Of a stretch of DNA of 64,000 bases, positions 17,537 through 63,376 are shown one piece after another. Within the stretch, counting starts at the first letter, position 1. Each line of letters begins with the position of its first letter. The position numbers and the translations under genes were made by a program. The notes under the pieces were generated by a model. That model saw only the letters and a list, made by a program, of their open reading frames with translations. It was not told the DNA's origin and made no database searches. This stretch comes from Anolis carolinensis (taxonomy: Eukaryota): positions 182,420,107 through 182,484,106 of the forward strand of contig NC_085844.1 of assembly GCF_035594765.1 (NCBI RefSeq). Reading direction: 5' to 3'.

Positions 17537-20500
17537 TTATTTTTATGCACCGCTTCTATCTCCCCGAAAGGACTCGGGGCAGCTTACATGAGGCCAAGCC
17601 CGGATAAAAACAACAAACCAAAATAAAATAACATCAGAGACTACAAACACAAATATTAAAATATAACAGTCTAAACACAGTAAAAAGTTTAAAATTATAA
17701 TCATTATAAGACATGGATTTGGGATCCAAGTGGAGGGGGTACAAAATGAGCTGGGCAAAGTGCAACAATTGAATATTGTATACATGAGGTAGATAATTAA
17801 GTGCTAGCATCAATGAGAGAGCAACTTGGGGTGGGGTGGACCCTGTGACTACAACAGACTAATAGGGCAAAATAAAGTAAAATAAATAAAATAAAATAAA
17901 ATGATCACTTTTTCCTCATCCAAACAGAAGGCAACAAGAAATCAAGCAAGCATCTGCAGTGCTGAGCAATAATATTTGTTTTGTTCTCCAGTTATCGGTA
18001 CATCAGTAAGAAAACAACGCTATTGCAAATGGCACAGCTATTGAAAGAGAAGGCAGAGAGATTTTTCAAACATTTCACTCCTTTCTCTATGATTTCTACT
18101 TTGAGTATGTACACAATCAAACGTCTCACCTGCTCATTGAAAGGAAGGGGAGGCACCTTGGGATCCAGGCGGAACATTTCCTCACACAGCAGAGATCTCA
18201 GACAAATAGCGAGGCTCTCAACATCCCTTGCCATAGGTCCTACACCTGCAACAACTAGGATCAAGAAAAGAATTGTAGTTTTCACAATCTGATCTTTCAG
18301 ACTCAGGGAACATTTCTGGGAGAAGTAAGAAGTTATGTTTACAACAAGAATCAACAAAGCTTGGGGCTCAGAAAAGATTACTTTTTGATTACATCCTCCC
18401 AAACATTACTTTTTGACTATGGGCCCTTCCACACAGCCCTATATTCCAGAATATCAAGGCAGAAAATCACACATTACCTGACTATGGACTCAGATAACCC
18501 AGTTCAAAGCCAATATTGTGGATTTTTCTGCCTTGATATTCTGGGATATAGGGCTGTGTGGAAGGGCCCTACATTGCCCCAAATCATTTCTGAGGGACTG
18601 TGGTAGCTGCATTCTGAAAAATGTAACTTTAACAAGTCCTGATCTTAAAGCGTAAAACAACCTAAAGTGCCATTTCCTTCTTGGAAGAGCTGGGTGATGC
18701 TGGTACCTAAAAAGTAATTTTCTGAGATTCCCCACCCCCATATGTAGCAAATCAAAATGATTTCAAAAAGAGACAAATCATGTGTTTGTGAATCAGATAT
18801 CTGAGACAACAACTTTCCTTGCAACCTAAAACTGCTCTATGTGAATGTCTCATATTCATTGTTGCTAGCAATTCAAAACTGAAATTTTTAAAACTTTTAA
18901 AATGTCTGTCAAGAATTAAATATTGCAAAGGAGATTATGGAAGAACCTTTGTGCACCCCAAAGGGATGTGAAAGATGCAATGCCCCCTCAGAGACTTTCT
19001 AACCCAGGCAAACTTTGACTCTCCAGGTGTTTTAGACTCCAACTCCCACAATTCCTAACATAAGGTAGGCTGTTAGGAATTGTGGGAGTTGAAGTTCAAA
19101 ACACCTGTAGGGCCAGTGTTTGCCCATGCCTATTTTAACCCCTTACTGCCACAACTTTTTCATTTTTAAAAACCACTGCAGAATTACATATCAATATAAC
19201 AGCACATTGTTTAGAAACCAAGCAAATCAAAAACACTACATTGAAAACTCATACCACCCTTTTGGAAACATGAACAAGGAGTGAGAGTATTGTGGTGGTG
19301 CTGGTAGGATGACGATATAGCCATTACTGTGTAGACCAGATAAGGCGTAAGACTTACACAATGCCAAATATCTATCAACTAATCTTTCCACTTTATTCAG
19401 ACAAAATCACACACCTGATTTCTGCCCACCAAGGCTTCGTATAACTCCTCTTTTGCTGTAAAAAGATAACCAAAATAAGAATGGAAAGCAAAAACAATAG
19501 TTTTAAACAAAGCTTCACTACTTTCCTAATTGGGAAATCTTTCTCAGGTCCAAAAGCAGTTGCTGCTTCAAGCAACTAAGGATGCATCTAGACTCTAGTT
19601 TGACATCACTTTAACTGCCATGGCTCAATGCTATGGAATCACAAAAGTTGTAATTTGGTGAAGTATCAGTACTCATTGGCAAAGAAGACTAAAGAACTTG
19701 TAAAACTTCAAATCCCAGATTCCATCACATTGAGCCATGACAGTTAAAGTAGTGCCAAAGTGTGTTAATTCTGCAGTGCAGATGCACCCTTAGAGGTCCC
19801 CTCCACCACGTGGCAGAGAAGGTACTTTAAGGAACAACAGCCTGCTCAGGCCCCTTCCACACTGCTGAATAAAATCCCACGTTATCTGTTCTGAACTAGA
19901 ATATATTGTCAGACATATTAAAAATTAACTAGGTATTTTAATTACAAAAATGTGATTTAAGCACTAGAAGGGTTAAATAAACCAGCATTGCCCTGAGGAG
20001 AGTGAGTACATCAAAGCCTGTTATAGTTAGTGGGCCAAAGCTAGTGTCGTCCTGAGGTGCGTGAGAGAAGCCTCACTATGAGGTAAGCCTCAGTGTGTGA
20101 GAAGGCCTGGTGTGAGAAGCTTCGGTGAGAGATGACCCAGTTGAAGGCCTCTTGTGTGAAGCTCCAGTGTGAAGGCTGCTGTGTGTAAAGCTACTGTGTG
20201 AAGCTACTGTATAACTTTGGTGTGAGAGGAGGCTCTGTGAAAGTGAAGCTGTTTATCTGCATGAAAAAGAAGTCCAGCATGGAAGCAAAGAAAGAAGTAC
20301 AAAGAACTTTATTTGTATTGTGAAAACCTTGTTTTTGTAAATAGTGCAAACCATATTATTTTACTATAAAGAAAAGCCTCCTAAGGAAAAGATAACATTT
20401 GTCTGTGTGTTTTTGTTCTATTTATCACTTTGGGCTACTGGTGCTGGGTTACACTGCTGCTTTTTTTTTCCATGTCAGGAGCGACTTGAGAAACTGCAAG

Positions 20501-23500
20501 TCGCTTCTGATGTGAGAGAATTGGCCGTCTGCAAGGACGTTGCCCAGGACACACCCGGATATTTTGATGTTTTTATCATCCTTGTAGGAGCTGGAGTTGA
20601 TAGAGGGAGCTCATCCGCGCTCTCCCCGGGTGGGATTCGAACCTGGCAGCTTTCAGATCAGCAACCCAATCTTCAAGTCACAAGGCTTTAATCCACTACG
20701 TCACCGGGGGCTCCCACTGCTGATAATAAGTTGCTATACATTTATGGGAAGGGTCTTTTGTTAATAAGCCCACTCGCCCAACAAGGGTTATGGGCCCAGT
20801 ATAGCCCTGTCTAGACCAATACAGACCATTGTGAGGCGGAAGAAATATGGCTATAGCATTTCAAGCAAGTGGACCGCCTTTTGAAAGGTTGAATGCCAGC
20901 AATTATGCCACATTGTTATTTAAAATAAAAAAATGTACCTTATTCGGTCGCCTGTAGTTTTGAGTCCACAAATCCCACAGAAGCCAGATGGAATACGGAT
21001 GCTGCCTCCTATATCTGTGCCGATGCCCAAGATTGATCCACCACTTTTAATAAGTGAGGCTTCTCCTCCTGAAGAACCACCTGGGGTTTTGGTGTGATCC
21101 AGAGGATGCACTGTCTGGCCAAATATTAAGTTGCTACAGTCAAAGCTGAAAATAAAGACAAGACAGCCAATAAAACAGACACAAATACCCCAAATCTTTC
21201 AAATAGAGGTCTGGAATACAATTTCAATCACACCCTGCCTTTAGCAACCCTGTCAATTGCTTGGGAAGAGAAATCTTTATTTCACTAAGGGACCACAGAA
21301 GCTCCAACTATGCAAAACCCTGCTTTCACTCTATTCCCCACGAGTGGGAGAGATTCCCCCATCTACCACAAACATTTGCCTGTCCAATTGGATAGTAAGG
21401 AGATGTTTTTCTATGCAGAAAGAGGCACAAAACGTCTGTAAATGGCCACTGAAATGAGCCCAGTTTGATATAAAAAGCACACCAGCTCCAAAATCTAAGG
21501 CTGTTCCCTGTCACTGCCTTGGGTCTTTCAAGGAGGTGTAATGCTCCAGGTCTTTTATTGAAACATGGCAAATACAGCCACAAGCTGGCTTTATTGCTGG
21601 GTATTGTAGGAGAGGGGAAAACAGCTATGGTGGTTGGGAAGCCAAAAGGAACCATTTTCAAACTTCTAGTTGAGCATGTAGAGTCTATCTCCTTTCTATC
21701 CTTTCGTACCACTAGAAAACAATAACTAGTCATTGTATTTCTTGAATGAGGTGTAGTAAGAATGGAGAGATGATTACCACAATAAAAATGGCTACTTTTT
21801 AAAATAAAAGCTGTGCATGCTCAAAGAAATTAAATATCACTGAAATATCACTTATAGTACAGTATAAATTGCTCCTTGGTAATATGGGAAGCATGCAGTT
21901 CTCCAATTTATTATTAGGTTGCTATTCTCATTAGTCTTCACTTCCTTCACCAATGGGGAGGGATCATGGGAGTTGTAATCTAGTTTCTCCCTCAATTTTC
22001 CATGAAGCATTATTTTTATTCCGAAGCTATTTTCAATATATTTTGGAACACAAGAGACTAATGGTCTAACAGCCAACAAGCTGATTTTGCAGAGCTAACA
22101 AAACCATTTTCCTTGCCCAACTGTCATACCACAATGTTAAGTGTTTTCATGCTTTTACACACTATAAAGATGGACTCTAGAAGCTCCACTGTCAGCCAGA
22201 CAGGGGCCAGTTTCATGGCATCCAGTTTACATCTTTTGTGTTTTATCTCTCTGGGGACAATTGAAGCGTTGCTCTAGGCAGTTTTTGTAAATCTGCTGTG
22301 TATCTATAAACAAGGGCCTTCAAATAAGTTGCTAGATAGAAATTGGACAGAAATTATTCATAGTTAGTAAACAGAAAGTTCCATTCTACCAGTCATGTGA
22401 GGTCTGAAAATATCTAGTAAGTTTCTGAGTATCTATGTAGAAATCCATATATACCAGCAGTTAAAAGAAAGATTTACTTCATTAAAGACTGAGGGACATT
22501 GGTTTTTACAAATGGAATTGCTCCTTGATGTTTCAACACCTGGACTAAAACAGCATCTTCCGCTGCTGGATGATTGAGACGTTTCACAAAACCCAAAGTA
22601 GAGTCAAAGCCCTGGAAAAAAAACAAAAGGAGATTATTCATATGCCCTGCAGAAACTTTATGTATCATGCAACAATCCTGATCATAATATAACAGAACAT
22701 CACAAGCAACAGACTAATCATAAATAACATGCATCTCCCACAATTTGTACACAAAATAGTTTCATTTCATTTTATATTCAGATCAGCGACATATGTAGGA
22801 ATGTTTACCATGTGACATTCCTCCAGTTCACCAAAATTAGCCAAAAAGAGATTAACATCTTAAATGTTCTTGTGATTAATTATGTAAAAAAGATTGTCAC
22901 ATTGCTGATTACTTTCACTTACCATTTCAAACATATGAAGTAAAGGAAGGAAATGTATTTTTAAAATGCATTTCATCCTGATGCATCTATTTTATTTTTG
23001 TCATTTGTTTTGTTTGCCATACTTTTGAGTAAATCAAAATAATTTTGAATATGAACTGATTAATAATATTCTTGAAATACATGGACAATTGTATTCCAGT
23101 ACTAAAGTTAAGCTCAACTGCATATGGCATGACTAAATTCTTGAAAATATATACTAGCAGGCTAATCAAGGAAACATTTTTGTTAACTGTCAATTCCACA
23201 ACTGTACAATTTTTTTTCAAAGGTTTCCAGAATAGTGAGGCTTTGAATGATTTGACATGACAAGAGGACCCATCATAGGATGGGAAAAGGACTTTATGAT
23301 GGAGTTCACCAAGCCATAGTTACATATTTCTCTGTTTCAGTCTATCAAAAAGATTGTTCAGCATATGAAATGGAATTTCATGAAATAAGAATGAAGAAAG
23401 GACATGGAGCTTGGGATATAGCATCTGAGAGGGACTGGAAATTACCATTTAGGGTCGTTTATAAGATCTCTTAACTAATCACATTTAGATGCTAGATTCC

Positions 23501-26500
23501 AAACCCCCTCGATAGTCACCTTGTCGTGGTGAGGGGGCTTGTGTGTTCCGATGAACCTGCGGGCACAACCACTGGAGTCATGCACTCCCAGAAGTGGCCG
23601 CAGGGGAGGTTCCAGACCAAGCACAATCCGAAGACCCAAAGACCTCAACGGCGGAGCAGGCGGAGGATAACATGGTACATGTTACAACGGCTGTGAAGGC
23701 AGAAGAAGGCTGCAACAGACTGAGAAGCCACTCTTGTTGTGTTAACCACACCACTGCTGGAACCTCACTCTGTGAAGACTGTGTGTTGACCAGCCGTGCA
23801 CTGACCTCCACACATTTAAAAAAATCACGCATAGGCGTCTTCCAACAAAAATAAAAACAAACCTACAAAAGTCCCATAGCGATCAGCTAGTGGCAACGGG
23901 GCCAGGACTGTGAAATCTGGAAGCCCCTAGTCACAGACTGGCACATGGGCCCTTCCCCATGTGGGGTGAGCAGAGCGGATCCTAAAAAGGGCTGCTCAGT
24001 CATGGATACAGCTGACGGACTACTCAACTGCCTCGGTCCTTGAGGTAGAACGAATGAGTCCATATGGTGGATATGGACTCAGTCGTTCTACCTCAAGGAC
24101 CGAGGCAGTTGAGGAGTCCGTCAGCTGTATCCATGACTGAGCAGCCCTTTTTAGGATCCGCTCTGCTCACCCCACATGGGGAAGGGGCTAGAAAAGGTGC
24201 CCTAAACATAGTCTGCCTCTCCTACCCTGACTGGACTGCCGCGTCCAGAGGGGTCACCACTCTGTGGCCAAAAAAGAGAAATGAACTTTGGAACATGGAC
24301 ACTCTTGGATAGCACAGACAGCGAACACCCCGAACGCAGGACTGCTATCATAGCAAGGGAGCTGGGACGCTTTAAGATCAACATAGCAGCCCTTCAGGAG
24401 ACCCGGAGAGCAGGAGAGGGACAGCTGAAGGAAGAAAAAGGAGGCTACATCTTCTTCTGGAAGGGACTGCCTGAAGAAGAGCGAAGAATACACGGAGTTG
24501 GCTTTGCTATCAGAAATGACCTGGTGAAGCACCTGATTGAAGCATCCACTGGCATCAACGAACGACTCTCAACCCTCCGAATTAACCTTGCCAAAAACCA
24601 ACAGGCAACCATCATATGCGCCTATGCACCAACTCTAGATGCTGACGAAGACATCAAGGAAAAATTTTATTGTCAGCTGGACACCATCCTATCGGAGATA
24701 CCTAAGAAGGACAAAATCATCCTCCTGGGGGACTTTAATGCCAGAGTCGGACGGGACTCCGACCTGTGGCCAGGGATCATGGGAAAAGACGGGGTCGGAA
24801 ACAGCAACTCGAATGGCATCTTGCTTCTCACCAAATGCGGAGAGCACAACCTTGTCATCACCAACACGCTCTTTTGCCAGAAAAACAAGCTCAAGACATC
24901 ATGGAAGCACACCGGGTCAAAGCATTGCCACCTCTTGGACTATGTAATTACACGTGCCAGAGACCGCCGCGATGTGCTTCTCACAAGAGCCATGACAGGT
25001 GCTGATGACTGCTGGACAGACCACAGGTTAATCCGATCCACAATGGCTATCAAGATCGTCCACAAACGGCGACTCCAAGGAAGAAAAACAAGGCGTAAAA
25101 TGAACACCCAAGCCCTTCAGGAGCCCTCCAAACGAGCCCTTCTCCAAACAACACTCAAAGATCATCCACCCACAGAACACCCCGAAAATGTTGAGGAACA
25201 TTGGAACAAACTGAAGACCTCCATCATCACAGCCTGCGAAGAAACCATTGGATACCAAACTAAGAAACATCCAGACTGGTTTGACGATAAGGACAAAGAG
25301 ATCCAACAGCTAATTGATAACAAAAGGAAAGCCTTCCAAACATGGCAGAGAGACACCAACTGTGCTGCCAAGAAAAAGTTCTATGCCAGTGCAAAAGCTG
25401 AGGTCCAAAGAAGGACCAGAGAACTCAAGAACATCTGGTGGACAAAGAAGGCTGAAGAAATCCAACACTTTGCAGATACCCATGATGCTCAGGGATTTTT
25501 CAAAGCCACAAAGATCATTTACGGACCAAGAAACCATGGCATACAGCCTCTATGCTCATCAGATGAAACCAAAATTCTGAAGGACAAAACATCAATTGCA
25601 CTACATTGGAAAGAGCACTACCAGAACCTGCTGAATCGCAGCTGCAATGTGGCTGAAGAGACCCTCTCACAAATCCCGCAACAACAAACCAGGGATGAGC
25701 TTGCAGCACTGCCTAGTTTGGAAGAAGTTAGCAATGCCATCAGCCAACAAAAAAAACAACAAAGCCAGCGGACCTGATGGGACCCCTGCTGAAATGTTCA
25801 AAACGGGTGGACCTGAACTGATACAACAACTCCACCAGCTGATTGAAAAGGTGTGGGTGACCGAGAAAATCCCAGCAGACTTCAAGGATGCCACCATCAT
25901 TACCCTTTTCAAGAAAGGGGGCAGAACAGACTGCGGGAACTATCGTGGTATCTCCCTTCTAACCTCCGCTGGGGAAATCCTCGCAAGGATTCCTTGCAAA
26001 CCGCCTTCTCCCTGTTTCAGAAGACACCCTCCCAGAATCCCAGAACGGCTTCCATCCCTCCAGAGGAACAGTGGACATGATCTTCACTGTACGACAGCTC
26101 CAAGAAAAATGCAGGGAACAAAACCAACCTCTGTACATGGCATTCATTGACCTTGCAAAGGCATTCGACACAGTGAATCGCAGCGCTCTCTGGACCATCC
26201 TCCAAAAAATCGGGTGCCCTGACAAATTTGTGAACATCCTGCGGCTCCTCCATGATGACATGATGGCAACAGTCTTGGACAGCAACAGCTCCCAAAGTGA
26301 CCCATTTAAGGTGAAATCAGGTGTCAAGCAGGGATGTGTTATTGCCCCCCCCCTTATTTTCCATCTTCATCGCTATGATACTTCACCTTGTTGATGGGAA
26401 GCTTCCCACCGGTGTGGAAATCATCTATCCGACAGATGGCAAGCTATTTAACCTCAGAAGACTGCGAGCCAAAACCAAGGTCACCACAACATCTGTTATA

Positions 26501-27720
26501 GAACTCCAATATGCCGATGACAACGTAGTCTGTGCACACTCAGAAGAAGACCTACAAGCCACTCTAAACACATTCACAGAAGAATACGAGAAGCTTGGCC
26601 TCTCATTGAACATCGAGAAAACCAAAGTGCTCTTCCAACAGGCACCAGCTAATCCCTCTGCGATGCCAGGAATACAGCTTAATGGTGTAACATTAGAAAA
26701 CATTGACCATTTCCGCTACCTTGGCAGCCACCTCTCCACAAAAGTCAACATTGACACTGAAATACAACACCGCCTGAGCTCTGCGAGTGCAGCATTTTTC
26801 AGAATGAAGCAGAGAGTGTTTGATGACCGGGACATCCGTAGAAAGACCAAGGTGCTTGTTTATAAAGCCATTGTCCTCCCAACCCTGCTCTACGCCTGTG
26901 AAACGTGGACAGTAGACAGACATCACACCAAACTCCTGGAGCGTTTCCATCAGCGTTGCCTCAGAAAAATCCTGCAAATCTCTTGGGAAGACAGGCGGAC
27001 AAATGTCAGCGTGCTGGAAGAAGCGAAGACCACCAGCATTGAAGCGATGCTCCTACGCCATCAACTCCGCTGGACTGGCCACGTTGTCCGAATGCCCGAT
27101 CACCGTCTCCCAAAGCAGTTGCTCTACTCCGAACTCAAGAATGGGAAACGTAATATTGGTGGGCAGGAAAAGAGATTTAAAGATGGGCTTAAAGCCAACC
27201 TTAAAAACTGTGGCATAGACACTGAGAACTGGGAAGCCCTGGCCCTTGAGTGCTCTAATTGGAGGTCAGCTGTGACCAGCAGTGCTGCGGAGTTCGAAGA
27301 GGCACGAATGGAGAGCTTAAAGGAGAAACATGCCAAGAGGAAGGAGTGTCAAGCCAACCCTGAACAGGACCACCTTCCACCTGGAAACCGATGTCCTCAT
27401 TGCAGGAGAACATGCAGATCAAGAATAGGTCTCTTCAGCCACCTGCGGACACACCCCCAAGACCCTATAACTGGAGGACCATCACCCTCGGCCTACGAGG
27501 GATCGCCTAAGTAAAGTAAGTAAGTAAGTAAGCTAGATTCCAAGCTCCACAACTATCCTTCATGCTTTTATGGTTTTAACCTGGATTGGTTTAATATTAA
27601 TGTTGTTTAATACAATTTTAATATTTGTATACTTGTATATTTTAAGTTGTATTGAAATGCTTTTAGTTGTGAGCCGCTTTGAGTCTCTGCATGGAGAGAG
27701 AAAGTGGGATATAAATAATA

Positions 27721-27771: not shown

Positions 27772-30700
27772 GTGGACAGTGTCATACTATAATGCCAATC
27801 CCACCCACTTCTATTGGTTTTTCTTGGGAAAGCATTCTTGTCCCAAGTTTTGGGCAATATATTTTAAAATAGACACCCCATACTAAAATTTGCTCAAGAC
27901 ACCTGCTCAGTGCCCATAAAACATTTAAACTCCATGCCCAATTTATGCTTTGTCACATGAATGCCAAGCAACCTGCCCATGGTCCATCCTGGCTGTACCT
28001 TGCAGTCAATTGAGTCCTTTATACTGACAGGAACCCCATAAAGCAAACCCTTATTTCCTTGACTTTTCACTTGCAGAAGTTGTGATTCACTGTCTTCAAG
28101 ATAATCAGTCAAACAGTTGACATCCTTAGTGACTTTCAAAGCCTATGGAAAGCAAGAGAAGGCAGCCAGTTAAGCAAGACAGCTGTAGTGGAAATATCAC
28201 AGAAGACAAATGTATATAGAGGAAATAGTACAGTGTCACAGTTGTGTTATGTATTTCCTACAAATACCTTAAGGCAGTGATTCTCAGCCTGTGGGTCCCC
28301 AGGTGTTTTGGCCTACAATTCCCAGAAATCCCAGCCAGTTTACCAGCTGTTGAGATTTCTGGAAGTTGAAGGTCAAAACATCTGGGGACCCACAGGTTGA
28401 GAACCACTGCCTTATGGGTAAAAAGTTTATTTATGATCTATATTTGCCAAGTATGTAACTTTGAATCAAATTTAACTGGGAACAAATGGCCTTGAGATGT
28501 GGGATGCCTTGACCTGGACAGGTTCCTCCTGATGATCAAATTGATCATTATTCACCAGATTGGGTGATCTGGCCAGTGTCTATTGTTTAATGCAGTGGTT
28601 CTCAACCTGGGGTCCCCATTTGTTTTTGGCCTTCAACTCCCAGAAATCCTAACAGGTGGTAAATTGGCTGGGATTTCTAGGAGTTGCAGGCCAAAAACAT
28701 CTGGGGACATAGGTTGAGAACCACTGTTTTAATGGTTAACTCCAGAAGCGACTTGTAGTTTCTCAAGTCACTCCTGAAACACAAAAAATAGTTTAGTTAG
28801 CCCATTATTCACCTGATTGGGTGACCTGGCCAGTATCCACTTGTTCATAGCTGGGCAGTGTTTACTTGTTTAATAGTTCAGATAGACCTGAGTTTCTCAA
28901 ACTGTGCTCCTCCAGATGTTTTGGACTTCAGCTCCCACAACTCCTAACAGCTGGCAAACTGGCTGGGATTTCTGGGATCTGAAGTCCAAAACACGTGGAG
29001 GAGTACAGTTTGAGAAACACTGAGGCAAACCATCATTTCCCTGATTGAGTAGCCTAGCTAGTGTCTACTTGTTTAATGTTTTGTGTAGCCCAATTAAAGA
29101 CATACAGTAGGATTAAAGCAAAGTACTTAGGCAACTGAGATGCTTATATAAGTCAAGAGAAGTTAGATTTAAGTTGAATTTCACTACCGACTGAGGTCGG
29201 GGATATAGGATTTGCCATTGGGGCATCTCTGGCTGTCATTCTCAGCGTTCCCAACAGACTAATTGAGACAGATTTGCTAGGTTTGTATGCATTCTTTGAT
29301 GTCTTGCCTGTTTTTCAATAAAATCTTGTATCACTTGGGTGTTCATTGTCTTTGAATCTCAAAAGAACCCTTTACCTTTGGCAAAACAACAGCTGCCTCA
29401 AACAGCAGATTGGGGAGGCAAATACCAACAGTGACTTGTTGCCGGACAGAGCTGTATATGACCCTCCCTAAGCTAGTTTGCTAGGAAGTAGGATTTGACT
29501 GGCACTCCACTTGGATTCTGTTCATATCATAGTGAGTAGGGGAAGATATCACCTTATCCTTTGCCTCAAAGATCAAAAATGATTTGACTGAGCCCTGAGA
29601 TACATTAATTGTAAGCCATAGCACAAACTTATGGCACTATATAAATATACAGTACAGATACCATCTCAAAATAACCATTTTAAGGGCATTCCCCCTGGAT
29701 TAATGTGGATGTTCTTTGTTCCACAACATTGACAGGGTTCACACTGGCTATCATTGGCCTTTCTCACATACTTCACCTTACTTGTTCGGTTGTTCAGAAG
29801 CCATCCCTCACCTTGTCCATGTAAGTATAGAGAACACTTTCAGGCAAAAGTAAACCATCCCTGAGTTTCCTACAGAGTTCAGGCAGGCTCAAAGACAAGA
29901 TTGATTCTGGTCGGTGGCTTGGATTCTGAATGAGAAAAGGAAATTATCCATGCATTAACTATAGCTCCCAATGATCAAAACACTCTGCCCAGCCTGGCTG
30001 TTTATACCATATAATCCACCCACACAAGCACCATGTGTCTATGTTTCTTTTGAGAGAGCAGAGCAGAGGACCCAGAATTAGCCAATGTTGTTGCATAAAC
30101 TGATTCAAGGATGTTTGATCTGCATCTGAAGAGTCTGGCCTTGGATTTCATTTCTCACTGGTCGCCCTTAAAACCTACTTGTCAGCCACAAAATGAGAAC
30201 AAGAACAGCCTGTTTTGGAAGAGCCCTTGGGAAGTTACATAAAACAAAATTATTCAAGATAACAATCTTATATTTCAGGTTGCCACACTATTTTGAAATA
30301 AAACGTATAACTAAGCACAAACACATATAACTGGAAACATGCACAATCTTTCTCTTTTTTAGCTCAGAGCATTGAACCATGTTAAAGCGGTGTCAAACTG
30401 CATGAATTCTACAGTGTAGATGCACCCCTGGATAAAGTATTCTCAACCTGTATTGTTAACTGGAGCCAGTTTGACAACTGACTTGAAGAAATAATAGTTG
30501 GTTACTAAGTCCAGCCATCCATAATTTAATGAAGGAGCTTCTGGTGGCGCAATGGATTAAACCCTTGTGTCAGCAAGGCTGCTGACTGACAGGTTGGCAG
30601 TTTGAATCCTGAGCTTCCATCTGTCAGCTCCAGCTCCCCTTATGGATCATCCTTGTGGGACATGAAAGGCTCCCACAAGGATGATAAAACATCAACATCC

Positions 30701-33700
30701 GGGCATCCCCTGGGCAACGTCCTTGCAGACGGCCAATTCTCTCACACCAGAAGCAACTTGCAGTTTCTCAAGTCGCTTCTGACATGAAAAAAATTAATGA
30801 AACCTCTAAAATATTCACATATTCAAAACAACTGAAAACGATTTCAGTTCATTTGATTGCAGATGCCGTTTGGTTACAAAAAGTCATTCTGCTTCTTCAA
30901 TAATGAAATCATCTCATCACATGAAGAATTATTTTATTCTGTTCTTTTGTTTGCATCCATCCGCCAATAAATATCTCCAGACTCTTAATAGTATTATAGA
31001 AATGTGTGTGCATCACAACATGCTGTGTATGTCCTGGTGCTGCTCTGCTCCAATGACCACAAATATGGACTTTCTTCTAACAGCCACATCTAAAAATCAT
31101 TACAGGAGTACAGTATAGCTGTATCACAATTAGTGGTTACTGAATGTTAGATCCAGACCTACAGCACTAGGTTCAAAGTCTCTTTTGCCAGGAAGCTGGT
31201 TTCGTCATAGGGCAGCATCAGGTCTATTGGTTTGAAGTTACAGAATGATAGATTTCAACTGAACTGCAGAAGGAACCTCTTGACAGGAAGAGTGTGTCTA
31301 CACTGCAGAATGAATACAGTTTGAAACCACTTTGACTGGTACAACTCAATGCTATGGAATCGTTGATTATTTATTTATTTATTTACCATACTTGTATCCC
31401 GCCTTTCTCAACCCCGAAGGGGATAAAAGGCAGCCTTACAAAGGCAACAATTCAATGAATAAACAAAAACATTAAAACCAAACAATGAAAACATATTATT
31501 AAAACAAGAATTAAAATCATATAATCCAGGTTGCAGTTTGTGGAGACACAAGCCCTTTTTGTCCCTGGAGGCTAAAGACTTTGGGTGTATCTACACTATA
31601 GAATGAATGCAGTTTGATGCCACTTTATTTTTGTTATGGCTAATTGCTGTGGAATCATAGGAGTTGCAGTTTGATGGGAAACCAGCACTATTTGGCTGAG
31701 AAGGCAAAAGACCTTCAAAAAACACAACTCCCATGATCACAAAGCATTGAGCCAAGGTAGATGGAAGTGGTTTCAAACTCTGTTAATTCTGCAGTGTAGA
31801 TGTACCCTTTGGAAAACTGCAACTGCAAGAATTCTATAGCATGGAGCCATGGCAATTAAAGTGCTGTCAAACTGTATCGATTCCACAGTGTAGATGCACC
31901 ATAAAAGTTTGGCAGTGGACTCAACTGGCTAGGGAGATGGTGGGGTTTCCTTTTGTGGGTATCTAAAAGGCAGATTGCCATAAGCATTTGTGGGGGGAAA
32001 ACACTTCAGGCAGCATCTTTAAAGTGCAAGGATAACAATATGAATTGGTTCAATTTCATTTTAACAGGCTTAATTCTGACTCAACAATAGGTTTAGGATT
32101 GCAGTGCACAAGTTGCATGCCAGCAGGTGCCTTTTCCATTCCAAAGGAAGGGGAACAGAGATTTCTATACCATTAGATTATGTAACACAATTTTGCTCCT
32201 GGGTGATAAAAGCCATTTCCTAACTGGTTCTATCATAAAAACATGGGGAAAGTTTATTAAACTGCAAAAACTTTGTTTTGGGAGGACATCCTGCAGCACA
32301 TTTTGCTATAGTTTTTCAATGAATATCTCATAGAGTCTCAATCAATTCAACATAGTTTGTGGAAGCCACGAAAATGAAGTTTCTGCAGGATAATAACTAC
32401 TGTACTTTCAAAGTAAGTTCCACACATTTAAACAGGAAATAACACTTTCAAACTAGGAACATAGTTCTTTTCAAATTTTGTAACATAGTGTTATGGTCCC
32501 ACTTGAATTTCCTGGGCTGCCTCCCATGGAATCATCTTTGAGAGCTCTTGGAGAAAGGGACAAGTCTCAGCAGATTGGAGGAGGGCAAATGTCATCCCTA
32601 CCTTCAAGAAGGGAAAAAAGGTCAACCTAAAGAATTACCGTTCGGTCAGCCTCACGTCGATACTGGGCAAGATTCTAGAAAAGATAATTATGGAAGTGGT
32701 CTGCAAACACTTAGAAAGGAATGCGGTAATTGCTAATAGTAAACATGGATTTTTCAAAAACAAGTAATTCCAGACTTATCTCATCTCTCTCTCTCTTTTT
32801 TTAACAGAATTACAAGCTGGGTAGATGCAGGGAATGCCATGGATGTAGCCTATCTGGATTTCAGTAAGGCCTTCGGCAAGGTCCCCCATGACCTTCTGGC
32901 AAAAAAGCTAGTCAAATGTGGGCTAGGCAAAACTACGGTTAGGTGGATCTCTAATTGGCTAAGTGAACGAACCCAAAGGGTGCTCACCATCCTGGAAAGA
33001 AGTGACAAGTGGAGCGCCGCAGGGTTCCGTCCTGGACCCGGTTCTGTTCAACATTTTTATTAACGACTTAGACAAAGGGTTAGAAGGCACGATCATCAAG
33101 TTTGCAGACACCAAACTGGTAGGGATAGCTAATACTCCAGTAGACAGGAGCAGAATTCAAAACGATCTTAACAGATTAGAGAGATGGGCTGAAACTAACA
33201 AAATGAAGTTCAACAGGGACAAATGCAAGATACAGAATGAGGGACACCTGGCTCAACAGCAGTACGAGTGAAAAAGACCTTGGAGTCCTTGTGGACAATA
33301 AGTTAAACCTGAGCCAACAATGTGATGCGGCAGCAAAAAAAGCCAATGGGATTTTGGCCTGCATCAATAGGAGTCTAGTGTCTAGATCCAGGGAAGTCAT
33401 GCCCCCCTCTATTCTGCTGGAATCACACTGTGTCCAATTCTCGGCATCGCAATTGAAAGGAGATGTTGACAAGCTGAAATGTGTCCAGAGGAGGGCGACT
33501 AAAATGATTAAGGGTCTGGAGAACAAGCCCTATGAAGAGCGTCTTAAAGAGCTGAGCATGTTTAGCCTGCAGAAGAGAAGGCTGAAATGAGACATGATTT
33601 ATAAGGGGAAGTCATAGGAAGGAGGGAGCAAGCTTGTTTTCTGCTGCCCTGGAGATGCGGAACAAGGGCTTCAAACTGCAGGAAAGGAGATTCCACCTGC

Positions 33701-35834: not shown

Positions 35835-36109
35835 TTTTTTTATCATGTCAGAAGCGACTTGAGAACATACTGCAAGTCGCTTCTGGTGTGAGAGAATTGG
35901 CCGTCTACAGAGATGTTGCCCAGGGGATGCCCGGATGTGTTACCTTCCTGCTGGGAGGCTTCTCTCATGTCCCTGCAAGCTAGATCTGACAAACAGGAGC
36001 TCACCCCATCTCGCAGATTTGAACCGGCAACCTTCAGGTTACCAAGCCAACCTTCAGGTCAGCAGTCCAGCCAGCACAAGAGTTTAACCCACTGCATCAC
36101 CGCAGCTCC
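35835..36109 (-). mobile_element. tRNA-headed Vingi-related SINE inserted in an old CR1 3' end (about 35600-35835)
   Basis: attctat duplicated on both sides; family body and tail. Confidence 0.85.
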
Positions 36110-36737
36110 TATTCTATGACCCTGTCCTACACAATTTTTTTTTAATTTAAAGACCAACCCATTTGGAATGGACGCAGAGAATACGTCCCATAGAACAGAT
36201 AGAAAATATGACTTCACTGTGTAATATTGAGAAGTGCCAGGGATGCAGTGGGTGCTATAACAAAGCAAAACAAAACAAATGAGTGCCACTTTCATTTAAT
36301 AAATGCTTATAGAATCATAGACTTGGAAGAGACTACAAGAGCCATCCAGTTCAATCGCTTGCCATACCTAGTTATCTGAACTATATTCTCCCATGAGTCC
36401 CTTTATCCTTTAAGATCTTCTGGACAGGCCTTTCTTTCTCTCCCACCACTTCCATAGGTTCATGTTTGGGAACGTGGTAGAATGCCTTATTGATGGCTGT
36501 GTTTAAACCAGTGGTTCTTAACCTGAGGTCCCCAGATGTTTTGGCTTTCAACTCCCAGAAATCCTAACAGCTGGTAAACTGACTAGAATTTCTGGTAGTT
36601 GTAGGCCAAAACACCTGGGGACCTACGGGTTGAGAACCACTGTTCTAGACTCTGGGAGTCACTTCCTATACCTATGAGTTAGACTGTTGCCTTTCCTATG
36701 GTTCTTTCACAGGCAGGTAAAGACTGTTTTGTTTCGA

Positions 36738-39700
36738 GGACTTCCGGTTTGGCGAGATGGCGGCAGGGCGGACTTCTTGAGGGCTCCCGAGAAGCCAGCC
36801 GAGCGGAGCGACCGGGTAGAGCGCAGAGCTCCCTCCCCCCAACGGATCGAGTTTGGGGGGACAGCCAAACCCGTAGGGCACCAACCGACGGTCTTGAGGA
36901 CCTCCATCCCTCAAGGGTGGGGGTCAGGAGAGACCCGGACTGGTAGCCCGCAGGGTGAGCGGGTCGTAGCGAGGCGACCGGACCAAGCGCCCGGATCACT
37001 GCCGAAACTCGCCCGATTTTAACAGTGCTAACAGGACACCAGAAAAGGTACGAAAGAAAATCCTAATCTATATTGGACTAAATACTTCACTAATACTTCA
37101 GTATTACATGTATATTTAGCATCTTGAAGAACTGGGAACCTAGAAAGTTAACCCAGAACTTAAAAGGGTCTCGTATATTGGATAAATTTCTACCCACGAA
37201 TAAAGGGACACACAATATTTCAATATAAGAAAATCGGAAAGACTCAAATTTTAAATCGCCCTTGCTAGGATTTGTAAAGAAAAGCGAGACATTGAAATTA
37301 AGAGGTTTAAAAACTAAAAGAATTTAAAATAATCTGATCTGACCTTGGGACAATATTGTTATGACTACGCCGGCAAACCCAGTCTAAACAATCTGATAAC
37401 GAAGAGGAGACACCAGCGGAAAGAACAAAGAAAAACCGGAACGGAAAGGAGATAGCTGCCCACGAACCATAGAGCAGCAGGAGGACTGGGTAGAGCAAGC
37501 AGTAGACAAAGAAGAGGAAATGACGAGGGGAGTGAAGGAGACTATAGATCGAGAAAAGTAAGGAACCCGAGAGCATAGACTGAGTTAAGGAAAAAAGAAA
37601 AGAAAAGAAATTGAAAGGGCGGCCCCGCGTAGGGGCCCACTGATAAAGAGAGCGACAAATAAAAGGGCAAAAGGGCGATCGTGGCTACGACAGAGGAGGG
37701 GTGAAGAGGTGAGAAAAGAGGTTAGGAAAAGAAGAAGTGAGAGTCATAGGAGACGGAGGAGGCACGATGGAGAAGAAATAAAGGAGCCACAGACAGCTGG
37801 GGAAAGACAACACTCAGTAGACAACGGACCATAGACCCAGGCAAAAAGAAGAAAGAGAAGGGGAAGAAGAGAAGAAAGGGGGAGAAGAGAGGGGGAAGAA
37901 GGGGAGAGAGAGAAGGGAAAGAGAAGAAGGGAAAGGAAGGGGAAAAAGACAAGAGGAAGGAAGGAAGAGGAAGAAGGGAGAAGGAGGGAAGAGAGAAAGG
38001 GGAAAGGAAAAGAAAGAGAAGGTCCGAAGGAAACCTAGCCTATAGACAGGTAGATTGGAGACGAAGAAGGACAGATAGACGGAAGAAGAAAGAAGGGAAG
38101 GGAAAAGGAAAAAGAGAAAAAAAGACAAACAAAGTAAAGTACGAGGATAGGAGGAACAGGGGGATAAAGTAAAGAAAATCCCCCCTCCCTCCTCTTTTTT
38201 TCTCTCTCTCTTTCTGGTTGGTGGGGAGATAAATAGATAGAAAGGAAGGGAGAAGGGAACGAGAGAAAAAAATAAAACTAGGAAAGAATGGCAACTTAGA
38301 ATTAAGATGGATAAAGACAAAGACAAAGATAAAGGAATGCAAAGGAGAGGTTCACTTGGGGAAGATATAAGCCTAAGAGACATTATGAAGGAAATGAGGG
38401 AAGTCATGAAGGAGGTCCAGAAAGTGGCCGAGAAACAAGACGCATACCAAAAAATGTTCCAAGACCAAATGTTAAGCATGAAGAATGAAATTACAGAAGA
38501 ACTGGGGGACATGAAGAAAGATATTAATAATCTAAAACAGGAAATTCAAGAAATAAAGCAAGACAAAATAAAACAAGAGAAATCCCAGATAAAAATCCAG
38601 ACAAAAGTAGAGAACCTAGAACTTAAAAATCAAAAACTAGAACAGAAACAAGAATTGATGGAACAGAAAAATCTAGAATCCCAGCTGAGATTTAGAAACA
38701 TAGAAGAAGAGAGTAGGGAGAATCTAAGAGAAATAATAATTAACTTATCATCGAATTTAACGCAAACTACCTACGAAAATATGGATCAGGAGATCGACAG
38801 AGTATACAGAATATCAACAAACTATGCAAGAAGAAATAAGGCCCCAAGAGACGTGATTGTCCATTTCTCAAAAAAAAAGAATTCGGGACAACATCCTAAG
38901 GGAGAACAACAAGAAACCAATATATTACAAAGGAAAAAAAATAGCTATTCTCAAAGAATTCCTACCATCAACTCTAATCAAAAGAAGAAAATATACGTTT
39001 TTAACAGAAGAATTAAAAAAGAGACAAATTAAATTCAGGTGGGAGCAACCAGAAGGAATTATGACGACCTATAAAGAAGAGAGACTGTGGATCACTACCG
39101 AAGAAAAGGCCAAGGACTTTTATAGAAATCTGAAGAAAGACGACAAAACTAACTTCCAAAGAAATAAAAAGAAGGAAACAAAGGACAGGACTGACAAGAA
39201 GAGACTTAGAGAAGAATCTCAGGACATAGAGAATATCAAAGGAGATACAAGCTCCGCGATTTTAGACGAGATTGAAGAGGTAGAGGAAGAAGGACAGGAG
39301 GAACTGGAAAACGATAAAGATGGGAAGATCGATAAGATGTTACTCGAACAACATTAACGGACTGAATTCACCAAAGAGGAAAAAAGTCTTCAACAACATC
39401 AGAACAGGACTCTACGACATTGTGGCCCTACAAGAAACCCACATTGCACAGAAGCATGTAACATATTTGACACAAAAACACTTAGGTAAGGAGTTTTACT
39501 CCTCGTCTATTGAAAAGAAGAGGAGAGTAGTAACATACATCAAAGAATGGATTCCATCGGAACTAGCTTTTAAAGACAACGAAGGAAGAATCCTGGGAAC
39601 TTTTGTATACCTGGAGAATAAAAAAGTCTTAATTTGTAATATTTACGCCCCTAATGGGCCAAAAACTCAATTTGTTAAGCAATTAAAAGATTTAATAATG

Positions 39701-40236
39701 GAACACGAATTTGAAAACTTGATTTTATTGGGTGACTTTAATGGAGTGATGAACGTGGATATAGATAAAACAAAAGACACAAAAAGAAAGAGTAAAAAGG
39801 GGGGGAGAGAATCTACCAAAAAACTTTATCAATCTGCAACAGGAAGTGGATTTACAAGATGTATGGAGATCCCACCACCCACAGGAAAGAGACTATACTT
39901 TTTTTCCTGACAGACACCATGTTTGGTCACGAATAGACATGGTATGGATCTCAAATTGCCTCTCAACTAAAATATCCAAAATGGAAATATTAGCTAGAAC
40001 TCATTCGGATCATTGCCCAATAAAATTTATAATACATGAAAGTAAAAAACCAGGGAAATGGAGGTTAAATGATCTACTATTAAAATCAGAAGAAGACATA
40101 GAGAAAAATAAACTTATATTGAAGGAATATTTTAAAATCAATACAACCCCAGGAATCTCGACCCAAACGGTATGGGAGGCCAGTAAGGCCGTCATGAGAG
40201 GCCACTTTATAAAACAGAACACATGGAGGAATAAAA
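36738..40236 (+). mobile_element. L1-clade LINE: 5'UTR, ORF1 (38307-39357, one frameshift) and ORF2 endonuclease; 3' part missing
   Basis: GC-rich start ggacttccgg...agatggcggc; coiled-coil plus RRM/CTD-like ORF1 (IDRVYR, PRDVIVHF); APE motifs NINGLN, LQETH, IYAPN, GDFN, SRID, SDH; stops after WEASKAVMRG. Confidence 0.93.
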
Positions 40237-41080
40237 GCTCAATCAGTTTAAACCTTTGTGAACCGCCTTGCATTTGGGATGGGAAAACGATGGGATACAA
40301 ATTCTTCCGTTTCCGTGTAAGAAAGGCAGAGCCTCTGACTTCTAACCATTCAAGAGAATGTGTAGACGCCTCATTAGGAACAAACCTAGTTAGACCATGG
40401 CTCAGATTTTTCCTTGTTGCCTTCCATACAATAGTATAGAAGGGTTTGGGCTCTGGTTTAACTATATCTAATTAAATGCATATAATTTCCAACATGTTTT
40501 CTTGATGCACTTAAATTCTGAGTACAGTGGAATGGTTGTTCATCAAGAAGTTTGTTCTAAACAAGCATGGAGAGAAAAAGACAAGAGATCCTTTGTGGTG
40601 AAAATTTTCACTTTAAACCGTTAGACCATATTCAAAGGTTTATGCATGCCCTAAGTACATGAAAGATTAGCCATCTTCCATAATAACTGAGGACTTCTGC
40701 AGGCTGATGTTCTACAAATCACACTGACTTGTTCCAGAAGCCAGCATACTATTATTTTTGTTGTTACTGGTGTTAGCACTGACTGAAAACCTATTCAGTC
40801 TTCATAAACATCTTTATCTTTTTAAAACTTTTCTGGTAAGAGGAACTATTGCAGTGGTAGAAAAGTATTACTACATAGTAGTGAAAAAAAGAATTCTTGG
40901 GAGGGATCTAGAAATATAACCTTGGTCTGGTTAATCCCTAAATGGAAGAGTTTCAGAAGAAGGTCATGACAAGCTCCCTGAGATATTCCTTGTCTTAAAA
41001 CACTGTATGAAATTAATGGGGGTTGTCATTATGTAAACAGAGGACTTGCAAGCACATAAACATGCAATGCATATATCATT

Positions 41081-41655: not shown

Positions 41656-52682
<11,027 letters not shown>

Positions 52683-54496: not shown

Positions 54497-55542
54497 ACAG
54501 AATCATAGAATAATAGAGTTGGAAGAGACTTTATGGGCCATCCAGTCCAACCCCCTGCCAAGAAGCAGGAAGTCACATTCAAAGCACCCCCCACAGATGG
54601 CCATCCAGCCTCTGCTTAAAAGCCTCCAAAGAAGGAGCCTCCACCACAGTCCGGGGCAGAGAGTTCCACTGCTGAACAGCTCTCACAGTGAGGAGGTTCT
54701 TCTTGATGTTCAGGTGAAATCTCCTTTCCTGTAGTTTAAAGCCATTGTTCCTCGTCCTAGTCTCCAGGGCAGCAGAAAACAAGCTTGCTCCCTTCTCCCA
54801 ATAACTTCCCCTCACATATTTGTACATGACCCTCATGTCTCCTCTCAGCCTTCTCTTCTGCAGACTAAACATGCCCAGCTCTTTAAGCCGCTCCTCATAG
54901 GGCTTGTTCTCCAGACCATTGATCATTTTAGTATAGTAGACACTATACTCCTATTGATGCAGGCCAAAATCCCATTGGCCTTTTAAGCTGCCACATCACA
55001 TTGTTGGCTCATGTTTAACTTGTTGTCCACAAGGACTCCAAGGTCTTTTTCACACATACTGCTGTCGAGCCAGGCTGTCGAGCCATTCTGTATCTTTGCA
55101 TTCCATTTTTTCTGCCTAAGTGGAGTATCTTGCATTTGTCCCTGCTGAACTTCATTTTGTTAGTTTTGGCCCATCTCTTTAATCTGTTAAGATTGTTTTG
55201 AATTCTGCTCCTGTCTTCTGGAGTATTAGCTATCCCTCCCAGTTTGGTGTCTGCAAACTTGATGATCGTGCCTTCTAACCCTTCGTCTAAATCATTAATA
55301 AAGATGTTGAACAGAACCGGGCCCAGGACGGAACCCTGCGGTACTCCACTTGTCACTTCTTTCCAGGATGAAGGCGCATTGGTAAGCACCCTTCGGTTTG
55401 TTCGCTTAGCCAATTTACAGATCCAACTAACTGTAGTTTTGTCTAGCCCACATTTTACTAGTTTGTTTGCCAGAAGGTCATGGGGGACCTTGTCGAAGGC
55501 CTTACTGAAATCCAGGTATGCTACATCCACGGCGTTCCCTGT
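54497..55542 (-). mobile_element. CR1 LINE 3' portion
   Basis: YLDFSKAFDKVPH, GVPQGSVLGP, IKFADTK; attctatg tail. Confidence 0.95.
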
Positions 55543-56717: not shown

Positions 56718-59700
56718 TTACTTCAGTTTTGGGAAGAGCTTATGAGCCACCTGAAAGCGAAGAAATAAACACATTAAGGAAAATATATGCAACCTATTAG
56801 TTCCTTTGGGAACAATTGTGCCCCATGCACAATAATCTTTGTCTCGTCACATTCCAGAAAGCTATTTATACAGGGATGTACTGTAATAGCAGCATATTGT
56901 CTCATAGAATTTAATAAAACTTTTGCATCGTTACTCAAAAGTCTTGTCTAAACTATCAATGTAAATAAGATGTCTAAAAATCATACATTTTATGCTAGAA
57001 ACCTGAAAGTATTTTAATGCCTACAGAACGCCAAAATGAAATTTCAATTTTTTTGCAAATGAGTGGATACTTAATTGTTCCTTATTTTATGCTGATGGCA
57101 AGTTTCTGTGATTCAGCACTAGGGAGGCTTCACAGTCACAAACTAACACTTACACAATGATCTCTAGCATGCAAGAAGTCAAAGAGTTCCTCTGTACACC
57201 GTTCTTCCGTATGGGACCTAGAGGACACTCGAGCATCACACTCCTCCAGACGTTCCCTGGCTTTCACACATTTTTCTGTCTGTTCACAGTGTTCCCTGAT
57301 AGTAGTCAAAGGATCCTGGAAAGAAAGTGATGTGTGAACAATTAATCGAGATCTCATTGCTAAAAGAGTGGTTCATCTTTATCAAGACAAGCTGATAATA
57401 AAAATGTACCTTCTGTAGCCCTACAATTATAACAAGTTTAGAAATCCTGAACTATATCCTTATAACTTCATCAATTTTATACTACGTACTTCCTATACTG
57501 AACAGCATCTTCAAGTGGTGCATAGTGTTAACAATGTGTCATTTCAAAATAATGTACTATTCTTCCTGTATCATCATTTTAAAAAGATATGATTAGGAGT
57601 CCTAGAATTATAAATGAGTTATGTATGACTGATTAGGGAGCAGGCCCCACATATAGCCTGCAGTCCATACAGAATTCATTTTTTACTCTAAAATAAATGT
57701 TGGTGCTTGCAAAAAACAAACATACATGTTTTGAGCTTTCTAGACAGCACAGTTTAAAACAGTGGTTTTCAACCTTTTTTTGACCAGGGATCACTTTGAC
57801 CAGGGACCACTCTCCAACATTAGTACCAAAAGGGTTGCAAATCAGTTTTTGGTCAACTTTAGATTTGGTTTGGTTATTTGAGATGCTAATTCAGAAAATT
57901 GCATAGGATAGACCACATCAGCTCTGATGCAGAACATATGCCATCCAGTAGCCGCCATCTGCTCACCCACAGAAAACCATATTTAATAATCCAGAGCTGA
58001 TGTGGTCTATCCAATGCAATGGTCAGCTCTGCAGAAAGGGGTGGAAATAAAATAAATAAAATGGATAAATAAAGAGGAAGGAGGTTCGCGGACTGGATTT
58101 TCATTGAGAACCACTGATTTAAAAGAACAAATTATAAAAAGCATAGAATAACATGCAACACTGATATTTGCACAGGATAGCAAAAAGTTTAAACTAGGCT
58201 TTACCCCTTCCATCTATCTATTAATGTATCACTATTCCTAAATTATCAGTTTCCAAGAAAAACACTGTATACTTCTGAGGATTAAAGCAAGATATAGTTA
58301 TACTTAGAAAGATCAACTTTTCTGAATGTGACAATGTGCAGAAATCAGTGTAGTACTCTACCCATATTAAAAATTATACAAGTTGGCAATATGGTAAGTA
58401 CCATAAGAGACTGCATTATGATTCTAAGATAAAGTGTTATTTGGGTATTGAAGGACTACCGGCATCTCATTTTTACTAATTAACTTTTGATTCTGAACCT
58501 GAATACTCGCTACCATTTTGTGCCATTAACAGCTTTCGAGATCTAATAGGGAAATTTCTTAGAAACTATTTTTTGTTGTTACTCATGATCACCAGGGAAA
58601 CCTGGTCAGTTATTATTATTAAAATTACATACCACAAGGTCTTCTTCCTCCTCCTCCTCCTGGATCAGAAAACAAGAAAATCAGAATGGACTTACAAGTG
58701 TGCTTACATTTACACAATGAGAATACACCCAGTCATAGCTACACCAACAATTATGTCAACTATTTCCATTTTTGCTTTATTTTATTTTGTGTCAAAAGCA
58801 TTGCATAATAAATAAATTTAAAAAGTGATGAAATAAAAGAAATCACAAGCAGCTAAATAGTTTTAGACCAAAAGCAGGCAACAGCAACCACATTGTCCCT
58901 AGCTTTAAACAACTCCTCCTCTGTACATGAGGCAGGACATTGTGGGCAAGCATACATATGAGGAGTTGTTTGTTCTGCTCTACAGCCACACAAGGTGGAG
59001 GATTCCTCCAGGTAGTGCCACTTTGCCAAGTTGTCTTTTGATCTGCCCACTCCGCTTCTGAGTCTGTTTAGGGACTTCTAAGTTGCCCATTCTTGGTTTG
59101 CCCCTGGAGGAAGACCCTCATGGGGGGCCATCCAGTTAGAATTGCCTGGTTTAGCTACCCAGAGGGACACTCTTGCTGTTGCTGGGGGAACAACTAGAGG
59201 AGTGGTGGTTCTCATGAAGCCCTTCCTTGATTTGAGTCTGGTGGGAGGAGGCTGATAGTCATGCAGTGGGTGGCTTTCACAATGTTCGACCTTATTCCTC
59301 TCACAGTTAGCAACAACTTCCAGTCGCACGTCAGGAGGGGCAATGGCGGCTAACTTGTAGGGTTTATCAACAGGTGTAAGTTTAAGGCATCCTGTGATTA
59401 TTCTGCATGTTTTGTTCAGTGCTATGGCCACCTGCTTCGCATGGGCAGACTTGTGCCAGACAGGATAAATGTCTATGGGGGACATAGAAAGAGCCTCCTC
59501 GAAGACTGAGTGAATTCAGTCGGGCGTCCCCCGGGCAACGTTTCTTGTAAACAGTTAATCTTTCCAACTCAAAAGCTTTTTTAATTTTTTTTGTTAAATA
59601 CTATAGTTCTCTATTATAACACATGTTTTATATTTGCTTAGTACAGAAAATATTTTTTTTAATTCCTAGATACTTGTCTCATATTTATGCAAGCTGATTT

Positions 59701-62736: not shown

Positions 62737-63376
62737 GTAAGAAGGGGGAAAAAGGACAAAATAACACACACAGGATGCATCCATATCAGGCCTGGGCAAA
62801 CTTGGCCCCTCCAGGTGTTTTGGACTTCAACTCACACAATTCCTAACAGCCTACTGGCATTTAGGAATTGTGGGAGTTGAAGTCCAAAACACCTGGAGGG
62901 GCCAAGTTTGCCCAGGCCTGATCTATATTCTGGAATTAATGCAGTTTAACACCACTTTAACCTTCATGGCTCTGCAATCCTGGGAGTTGTGTTTCAGCGA
63001 GGCCACAGCCCTTTTTGGCAGAGAGGGCTACAGATCTTGTGAAACTACAACTCCAACGGTTCCATACCATTGAGCCACGACAGAGTGAAAGCGGTGCCAA
63101 ACTGCATCCATTCTACAGTGTGGAACTGAACTGTCATAAGGCAACCTCTTTCTCGTCCTTTGAAATTCTTCTAAGGACATTGGGAGATCTTCTGGAGCAC
63201 TAGTTCTCAATCTGGAATCCCCAGATGTTTCTGGTCGTCAACTCCCAGAAATCCTAACAGCTGGTAAACTGGCTGGGATTTCTGGGATTTGTAGGCCAAA
63301 AACATCTGGGGACCCCAGGTTGAGAACCACTGCTCTGGAGAGTTTGTCAGGTGGATTCGGCCTTGGGTATTCCTCA

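Follow-up and report, generated by a model that had tools for sequence, protein, structure and literature searches.

An HDV-like fold with an L3 hairpin at the 5′ end of Vingi LINEs and an inverted fossil copy in Anolis carolinensis

A 64,000-nucleotide stretch of Anolis carolinensis DNA (the window, repeat-rich lizard DNA, in which all positions below are counted) contains, next to a piece of a Vingi LINE, a sequence resembling the HDV ribozyme with an extra hairpin in L3. The locus raises two questions: whether this sequence is a genuine ribozyme fold of the Vingi element, and how it came to lie inverted with respect to the rest of the insertion. Taken as a whole, the explanation that we favor with fair confidence is that Vingi RNA begins with an L3-stem HDV-like fold and pairs its two ends, and that the window copy is a fossil of twin priming. 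The features are as follows.

59477-59564, plus strand: Vingi RNA nt 1-88 in an HDV-like ribozyme fold, turned around with respect to the remaining insertion; carries the inactive alleles C75U (59555) and G73A (59553)
59477-59483, plus strand: 5′ strand of P1; G1 is the predicted cleavage site and the first base of full-length Vingi
59487-59492, plus strand: 5′ strand of P2, partner 59559-59564
59493-59501, plus strand: 5′ strand of P3 (GCC) and catalytic L3 core U20 C21 C22 .. C24 G25, in which only positions 21 and 23 vary
59502-59522, plus strand: L3 insert in place of HDV nt 26-27, made of W-A, a 6-bp hairpin (59504-59509/59516-59521) and G
59523-59534, plus strand: 3′ strand of P3, 3′ strand of P1 and the GG of P1.1
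59535-59558, plus strand: J1.1/4, P4 and J4/2 (G74, U75 in the window copy, A78)
59570-59576, plus strand: 5′ arm of the 5′-3′ end-pairing stem, cut at RNA nt 100, the end of the inverted piece
59466-59476, no strand: 11-nt filler of the inversion junction, differing from the family's continuation; its last base, T, is position -1
58853-59465, minus strand: Vingi ORF, 3′ part with its last ~200 codons, element nt ~2428 onward, with one in-frame stop at 59080-59078
58793-58803, minus strand: 3′ arm of the end-pairing stem, directly 5′ of the terminal ACAC(G)
58776-58792, minus strand: terminal ACAC(G>A), followed by a short (AAAAT)n tail; loose ends of the family at 58776 and 58781
58774-58778, no strand: left TSD copy, GCTTT
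59575-59579, no strand: right TSD copy, its GC common to RNA nt 99-100 (priming microhomology)
3483-3575 (minus), 14116-14205 (plus), 20514-20582 (minus), 30655-30743 (plus) and 35890-35975 (minus): SINE2-1_ACar-like copies with the Vingi ribozyme fold and an end-pairing hairpin

We found five helices in nested double-pseudoknot order across 59477-59564. P1 (59477-59483/59526-59532) is paired at 7/7 positions and P2 (59487-59492/59559-59564) at 6/6, P3 is formed by 59493-59495 and 59523-59525, L3 (59496-59522) opens with TCCTCG, and GGGCAAC lies at 59533-59539. Every helix of the double pseudoknot proposed in the initial annotation was thus recovered at its position, as were the GCC-TCCTCG and GGGCAAC blocks that it had likened to the genomic HDV core. 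Indeed, a local alignment to Rfam RF00094 runs from end to end (1-89/89) with 21 nt replacing 2 at the end of L3, where the extra hairpin (59504-59509/59516-59521) had been placed at nt 26-27. The window copy has a G1-C pair, where 6/9 aligned sequences have G-U, and the position equivalent to C75 (59555) is T, as had also been noted. A strict HDV descriptor allowing a long L3, composed after the site was known, matched the window at this site alone and none of 20 shuffled windows; a relaxed version gave 81 matches in the window and is not specific. The local RF00094 score was 25.1 bits, below the gathering threshold of 50, and the whole-window Rfam scan returned 76 weak matches and no ribozyme, which appears only in the local scan. 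Because the folding energy of the whole motif is ordinary (z -0.94), the case rests on covariation. A chance resemblance to HDV within a GC-rich repeat, for which the sub-threshold Rfam score and the ordinary z might speak, is of negligible probability given the unique strict match and its absence from shuffles, and is ruled out by the covariation of P1, P2, P4 and the hairpin together with the fixed position of the motif at element starts, both described below.

Other repeats lie in the same window. By-eye assignment of the LINE remains at 4628-6238 (minus), 24281-27514 (plus), 38307-40439 (plus), 1985-2614 (plus) and 55015-55530 (minus) gave R4-like, RTE-like (near full length), L1-like and CR1-like ORF pieces. 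A near-perfect 116-bp inverted repeat with a 5-nt spacer (23950-24186) lies just upstream of the RTE-like element. Palindromic MITE-like repeats at 19025-19106, 28301-28996, 36534-36616, 49246-49852 and 62813-63307 match Rfam mir-5408 below gathering, and the mir-5408 family may derive from such a repeat.

We gathered Vingi relatives by protein similarity and not by RNA motif, and nearly all those with a readable 5′ end open with an HDV-like fold. Eight loci besides the window copy (L002, L003, L007, L086-L089 and L091, from hosts including lizard and insects) carry the L3 hairpin with compensatory changes, and all have C75. In the alignment of these nine sequences 98.5% of the cells are paired, compared with 86.5% after shuffling (0/500 shuffles) and 35-50% in slid controls, neither control taking account of relatedness among the nine. 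Changes on both sides were seen in 12/29 pairs, so the covariation across copies on which the initial annotation had made its reading depend is present. P2 is 100% paired with 4/6 pairs altered on both sides. All cells of the L3 hairpin are paired as well, with 2/6 pairs altered on both sides; one column has five pair types, another three, and four are invariant, so the hairpin's covariation comes from two columns. Its loop is free to vary, so that L3 measures 27-53 nt. From the nine sequences RNAalifold recovered P1, P3, the L3 hairpin and P4 unaided. Single-sequence MFE prediction misfolds L002 and L088. U20, C22, C24, G25, G38/G39 and A78 are invariant in 9/9, and the C21/C22-G38/G39 pairs (P1.1) are invariant or wobble. 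C75 is present in 8/8 other aligned members and in L178, a full-length Anolis copy, the window copy being the sole exception. In the RNAalifold consensus, U20 has a possible alternative partner in an invariant G 5′ of P3, and this pairing could compete with the catalytic U20-G25.

Comparison across animals confirmed the predicted HDV-like fold at the Vingi 5′ end as real, and the covariation supports the L3 hairpin as the putative mark of a Vingi ribozyme subclass. The L3-extended subclass proposed earlier is therefore upheld, but not its restriction to vertebrates, since L088 from the psyllid Diaphorina citri has the hairpin. In the subclass, found in one Vingi subclade to which this Anolis family belongs, W-A-[6-8-bp stem, free loop]-G stands in place of HDV nt 26-27 with the catalytic residues all kept. 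About a dozen other, more distant Vingi elements have a canonical 7-nt L3; several match Rfam HDV-like families, and L019 exceeds the gathering score of CPEB3 (RF00622). In phage and bacterial genomes the L3-hairpin pattern gave 86 sequence matches, none with the full fold, and we saw no sign of the L3-stem variant outside Vingi in the phage and bacterial genomes searched; a search of viral contigs found no Vingi relatives.

On the ORF tree the L3-hairpin subclass is confined to one well-supported subclade, yet is not one clade: a single origin of the hairpin without loss or exchange was ruled out (at least 3 changes, p-AU 0.0004), with the labels of L004 and L005, both truncated before L3 is complete (L004 by its contig end), assigned by identity to L001. 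The element whose ORF is sister to the Anolis hairpin family, L004, has its visible 5′ module in common with L001, which points to an exchange of 5′ modules between families. Three Vingi families carry a near-identical 5′ module (L001:2-82, L004:1-60, L005:1-17), possibly by exchange, and the L3 of L001 is canonical. We also observed canonical Vingi ribozymes (L019:16-92, L036:663-760 and L001) in which G21 and a GC partner replace C21 and GG, a compensatory change in P1.1, and a very short HDV-like fold with P4 almost absent at the 5′ end of deeper-branching Vingi/Ingi-like elements (L030:104-160, L056:439-495).

We then placed the motif within the element. Two full-length copies, L178 (3.1 kb) and L088, start at G1, the first right behind a 10-nt TSD and the second right behind its own TSD. 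These 5′ ends support the motif as the 5′ terminus of the Vingi LINE, nt 1-88, in agreement with the earlier proposal. L002, another Anolis locus, has the same motif (88% over 104 nt), and its ORF ATG lies 109 nt after G1. The window ORF piece is 87-91% identical to A. carolinensis LINE proteins with APE endonuclease and RT and no RNase H; the domains of P0282 are Exo_endo_phos and RVT_1 only, and the single ORF is of Vingi type. From the Anolis origin and the 5′ and 3′ likeness to the SINE tied to Vingi-2_ACar (PMC5786205) we infer the Vingi clade, and the family is presumably Vingi-1_Acar. As to the surroundings of these copies, L178 (L178:2505-5635) lies within a C2-domain (synaptotagmin-7) gene, and its 847-aa ORF is labelled 'synaptotagmin-7 isoform X1' by NCBI, apparently an annotation artefact; in L002, from ~4925, the Vingi ORF is interrupted by repeated LTR-like sequence and its 3′ half is outside the locus.

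Whether the RNA cleaves itself at G1 is a separate matter. Starting at G1 is compatible with the predicted cleavage and equally with an internal promoter, and indeed the 77-nt ribozyme of L1Tc doubles as one (PMC3185411). As to expression, no RNA record was found among the matching database entries. The fold could be real and kept for a non-catalytic role (shielding the 5′ end, binding the RT, starting translation or serving as an overlapping internal promoter), with the L3 hairpin slowing or blocking cleavage and transcription starting at G1. The dual nature of the L1Tc element (PMC3185411) lends this some plausibility, as do the invariant G that can pair with U20 and the literature searched, in which we found no natural L3-insert ribozyme with measured activity. 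Against it, G1, U20, C22, C24, G25, G38/G39, C75 and A78 persist in every non-fossil member despite ORF divergence of up to ~50%, and the drift falls on the hairpin loop, P2 and P4. T occupies position -1 in 18/20 loci (a count that omits the ambiguous L086 and L091 and includes some related loci), and HDV cleavage works best with U at -1 (PMC1874588). In TSD-defined cases this T belongs to the target, where a target preference or pairing with an A added to the cDNA is possible.

The SINE copies bear on the same point. All five match the ribozyme model (E 4e-9 to 2e-3), and they retain the paired P2, P4 and L3 hairpin and the GGCCAA attributed to them in the initial annotation. Cleavage in such copies would cut off the tRNA head, and they mostly lack G1 and G25: position 1 is C in 3/4 readable copies and G25 is missing in 4/5, while C75 is kept. 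G25A cuts HDV activity ~3000-fold (PMC1874588). Because of the C at position 1 and the loss of G25, the SINE ribozymes are probably inactive, disarmed as needed to keep the tRNA head. Weighing these points, we regard a purely non-catalytic role as unlikely and prefer a predicted 5′ ribozyme.

The 5′ module has a counterpart at the 3′ end. In 15/15 elements with both ends available, a segment after P2 complements the bases immediately preceding the terminal A(C/T)ACG, with 4-12 contiguous pairs whose sequences differ between families. The 5′ arm starts 5-6 nt after P2 in 14/15 elements and 65 nt after it in L009. Cognate end duplexes have a mean of -15.4 kcal/mol versus -7.8 kcal/mol for swapped partners (0/100000 permutations), and the exact permutation value on 8 representatives is 1/40320. 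Covariation thereby shows that the two ends of the Vingi RNA pair in one stem, whose 3′ arm is the final ~10 nt preceding ACACG. The arms lie side by side in the SINE copies, where they close into a local hairpin. We infer that the stem would be the recognition structure of the RT, limiting mobilisation to RNAs with both ends. If so, it would account for the retention of both ends in Vingi derivatives, a question left open in PMC5786205, and for the priming of the second nick at the window locus inside the 5′ arm.

With both ends defined, the geometry of the window locus can be read. The Vingi ORF piece (59465->58853) and the ribozyme are on opposite strands, head-to-head and inverted. The initial annotation had the ribozyme attached to a Vingi LINE fragment; a Vingi ORF piece does adjoin, but the orientation does not fit, the ribozyme being on the plus and the ORF on the minus strand, which rules out the ribozyme as a same-strand upstream part of the window ORF. 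Relative to L178, the locus consists of RNA nt 1-100 inverted, the 11-nt filler, and nt ~2428 to the end; RNA nt 101-2427 (~2.3 kb) are absent, and the 3′ piece of ~690 nt is on the minus strand. A 5-bp TSD, GCTTT (58774-58778 and 59575-59579), brackets both pieces in A/T-rich DNA, and its GC coincides with RNA nt 99-100, a microhomology at the internal priming site. An 8-bp repeat (58792/59569) was rejected as a TSD, since it corresponds to the two end-pairing arms. The filler gave only 7-8-mer matches to element sequence, and no empty-site allele for the GCTTT duplication was found among the contig joints listed.

At least eight other Anolis contig joints link differing Vingi 3′ breakpoints (58868, 58873, 58884, 59014, 59058, 59064, 59117 and 59395) to ribozyme nt -1 to ~+11 in the inverted sense, on short public contigs whose outer ends are outside view. 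Since the inverted joints recur at ribozyme nt -1 to +11, the template RNA ended repeatedly at or near G1, an outcome that cleavage would give and so would an internal promoter such as that of L1Tc (PMC3185411). At window position 59576, 22 contigs depart with ATTG and agree poorly beyond it; RNA nt 100-104 may be where many Anolis 5′ modules end.

L1 twin priming, reportedly described by Ostertag and Kazazian in 2001, is said to leave a 5′ inversion, a single TSD and microhomology at the internal priming site. The gap in classic L1 twin priming is far smaller than the 2.3 kb seen here. Apart from this very large gap, the geometry of the window locus is that of twin priming; it differs from the L1 case in that only the outermost 100 nt of the 5′ end are inverted, that 2.3 kb are missing, and that Vingi junctions cluster at the first bases of the ribozyme. 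The first-strand cDNA would have extended from the tail over ~690 nt. Priming from the second target nick would then have begun at RNA nt 99-100, within the 5′ arm that end-pairing kept close to the target, the second cDNA would have run off the RNA 5′ end at G1, and the two cDNAs would have been joined through the filler.

A full-length copy altered later by deletion/inversion, or a 5′ fragment that landed head-to-head next to an older 3′ fragment, would be compatible with the shortness of the TSD (5 bp), the filler, whose matches to the element are no longer than 7-8-mers, and the slightly different divergence of the two pieces from L178 (86.7% nt identity for the 5′ piece, 90.6% for the ORF piece). 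We nevertheless consider such a history quite improbable: both pieces lie within one TSD, whose overlap with RNA nt 99-100 is what twin priming predicts, G1 is exactly where the inverted piece stops, and the same geometry recurs at the other loci (at least eight) with different 3′ breakpoints. The twin-priming product is now a fossil, because it is inverted, ~10-13% diverged and carries C75U. The corresponding C-to-U change at the catalytic site inactivates HDV-like ribozymes (PMC3774820, PMC10879173). With C75U and G73A the window copy is very likely dead, as the initial annotation had supposed from the T at 59555, and it has no likely function.

L3 forms the HDV active site, and to our knowledge it measures 7-8 nt in the natural HDV-like ribozymes described. 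The genomic HDV ribozyme (RF00094) and the HDV-like families RF00622 (CPEB3) and RF02682 have the same nested P1/P1.1/P2/P3/P4 double pseudoknot as Vingi, with the GCC-UCCUCG core, GGGCAAC and C-N-R-A in J4/2 in common; most Vingi members have a G1-U37 wobble. In contrast to their L3 of 7-8 nt, that of the Vingi subclass has 27-53 nt with a covarying stem replacing nt 26-27, and the window copy has U75. In the sister clade, L1TcRz/Pr77 of the trypanosome L1Tc-ingi elements (PMC3185411, PMC4035085) is likewise an HDV-like ribozyme in the first ~80-90 nt of an APE-type LINE; its cleavage site is element +1, as predicted for Vingi, and like the Vingi module it is retained in internally deleted derivatives, but it has no L3 hairpin, and we found no 5′-3′ end pairing described for it. 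As predicted for Vingi, the 5′ ribozymes of the rDNA-specific R2 (PMC3774820) free the retrotransposon RNA by an HDV-like fold and lose cleavage upon the catalytic C-to-U change, but their variation sits in J1/2, P4 and J1/4 and not in an L3 stem. The LINE clades listed with ribozymes are R1, R2, R4, RTE and Ingi as well as LOA, with Vingi absent (PMC5786205), and a 2026 review of Vingi gene writers names a ribozyme for R2 only (PMC13708176). The papers searched contained no Vingi ribozyme, L3-stem HDV-like ribozyme or Vingi end-pairing; prior description is possible.

The five SINE copies of the window have a Vingi 5′ module and 3′ end like the bipartite SINE2-1_ACar/Vingi-2_ACar derivatives of PMC5786205, which traces only where the sequences come from and does not settle why bipartite elements arise from Vingi; in our analysis the 5′ module has the ribozyme fold and the two parts pair. 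The end-pairing offers a testable answer to the question of bipartite non-autonomous Vingi derivatives. A wider reading, for and against which we see equal weight, is that Vingi has a two-part 5′ device, an active L3-stem HDV-like ribozyme subclass and an end-pairing stem acting as RT recognition structure, with 5′ modules also exchanged between families. If this is true, only RNAs with both ends would be mobile, the bipartite Vingi SINEs and non-autonomous elements would be explained, and the stem would cause the recurrent ribozyme-only 5′ inversions.

With these findings Vingi joins the LINE clades with (predicted) 5′ ribozymes, across lizards and insects. A natural covarying L3 stem would extend the known tolerance of the HDV fold, and, with an Rfam score under threshold, such ribozymes would be overlooked by short-L3 descriptors. 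Anolis Vingi-1 serves as a platform for RNA-only gene insertion, with the native 5′ UTR in both driver and donor RNAs (PMC13708176). Should this 5′ UTR cleave itself and pair with the 3′ end, there would be consequences for capping and stability, for truncated or inverted products and for the design of templates, and the two-part device, if real, would set the template design rules for Vingi gene writers.
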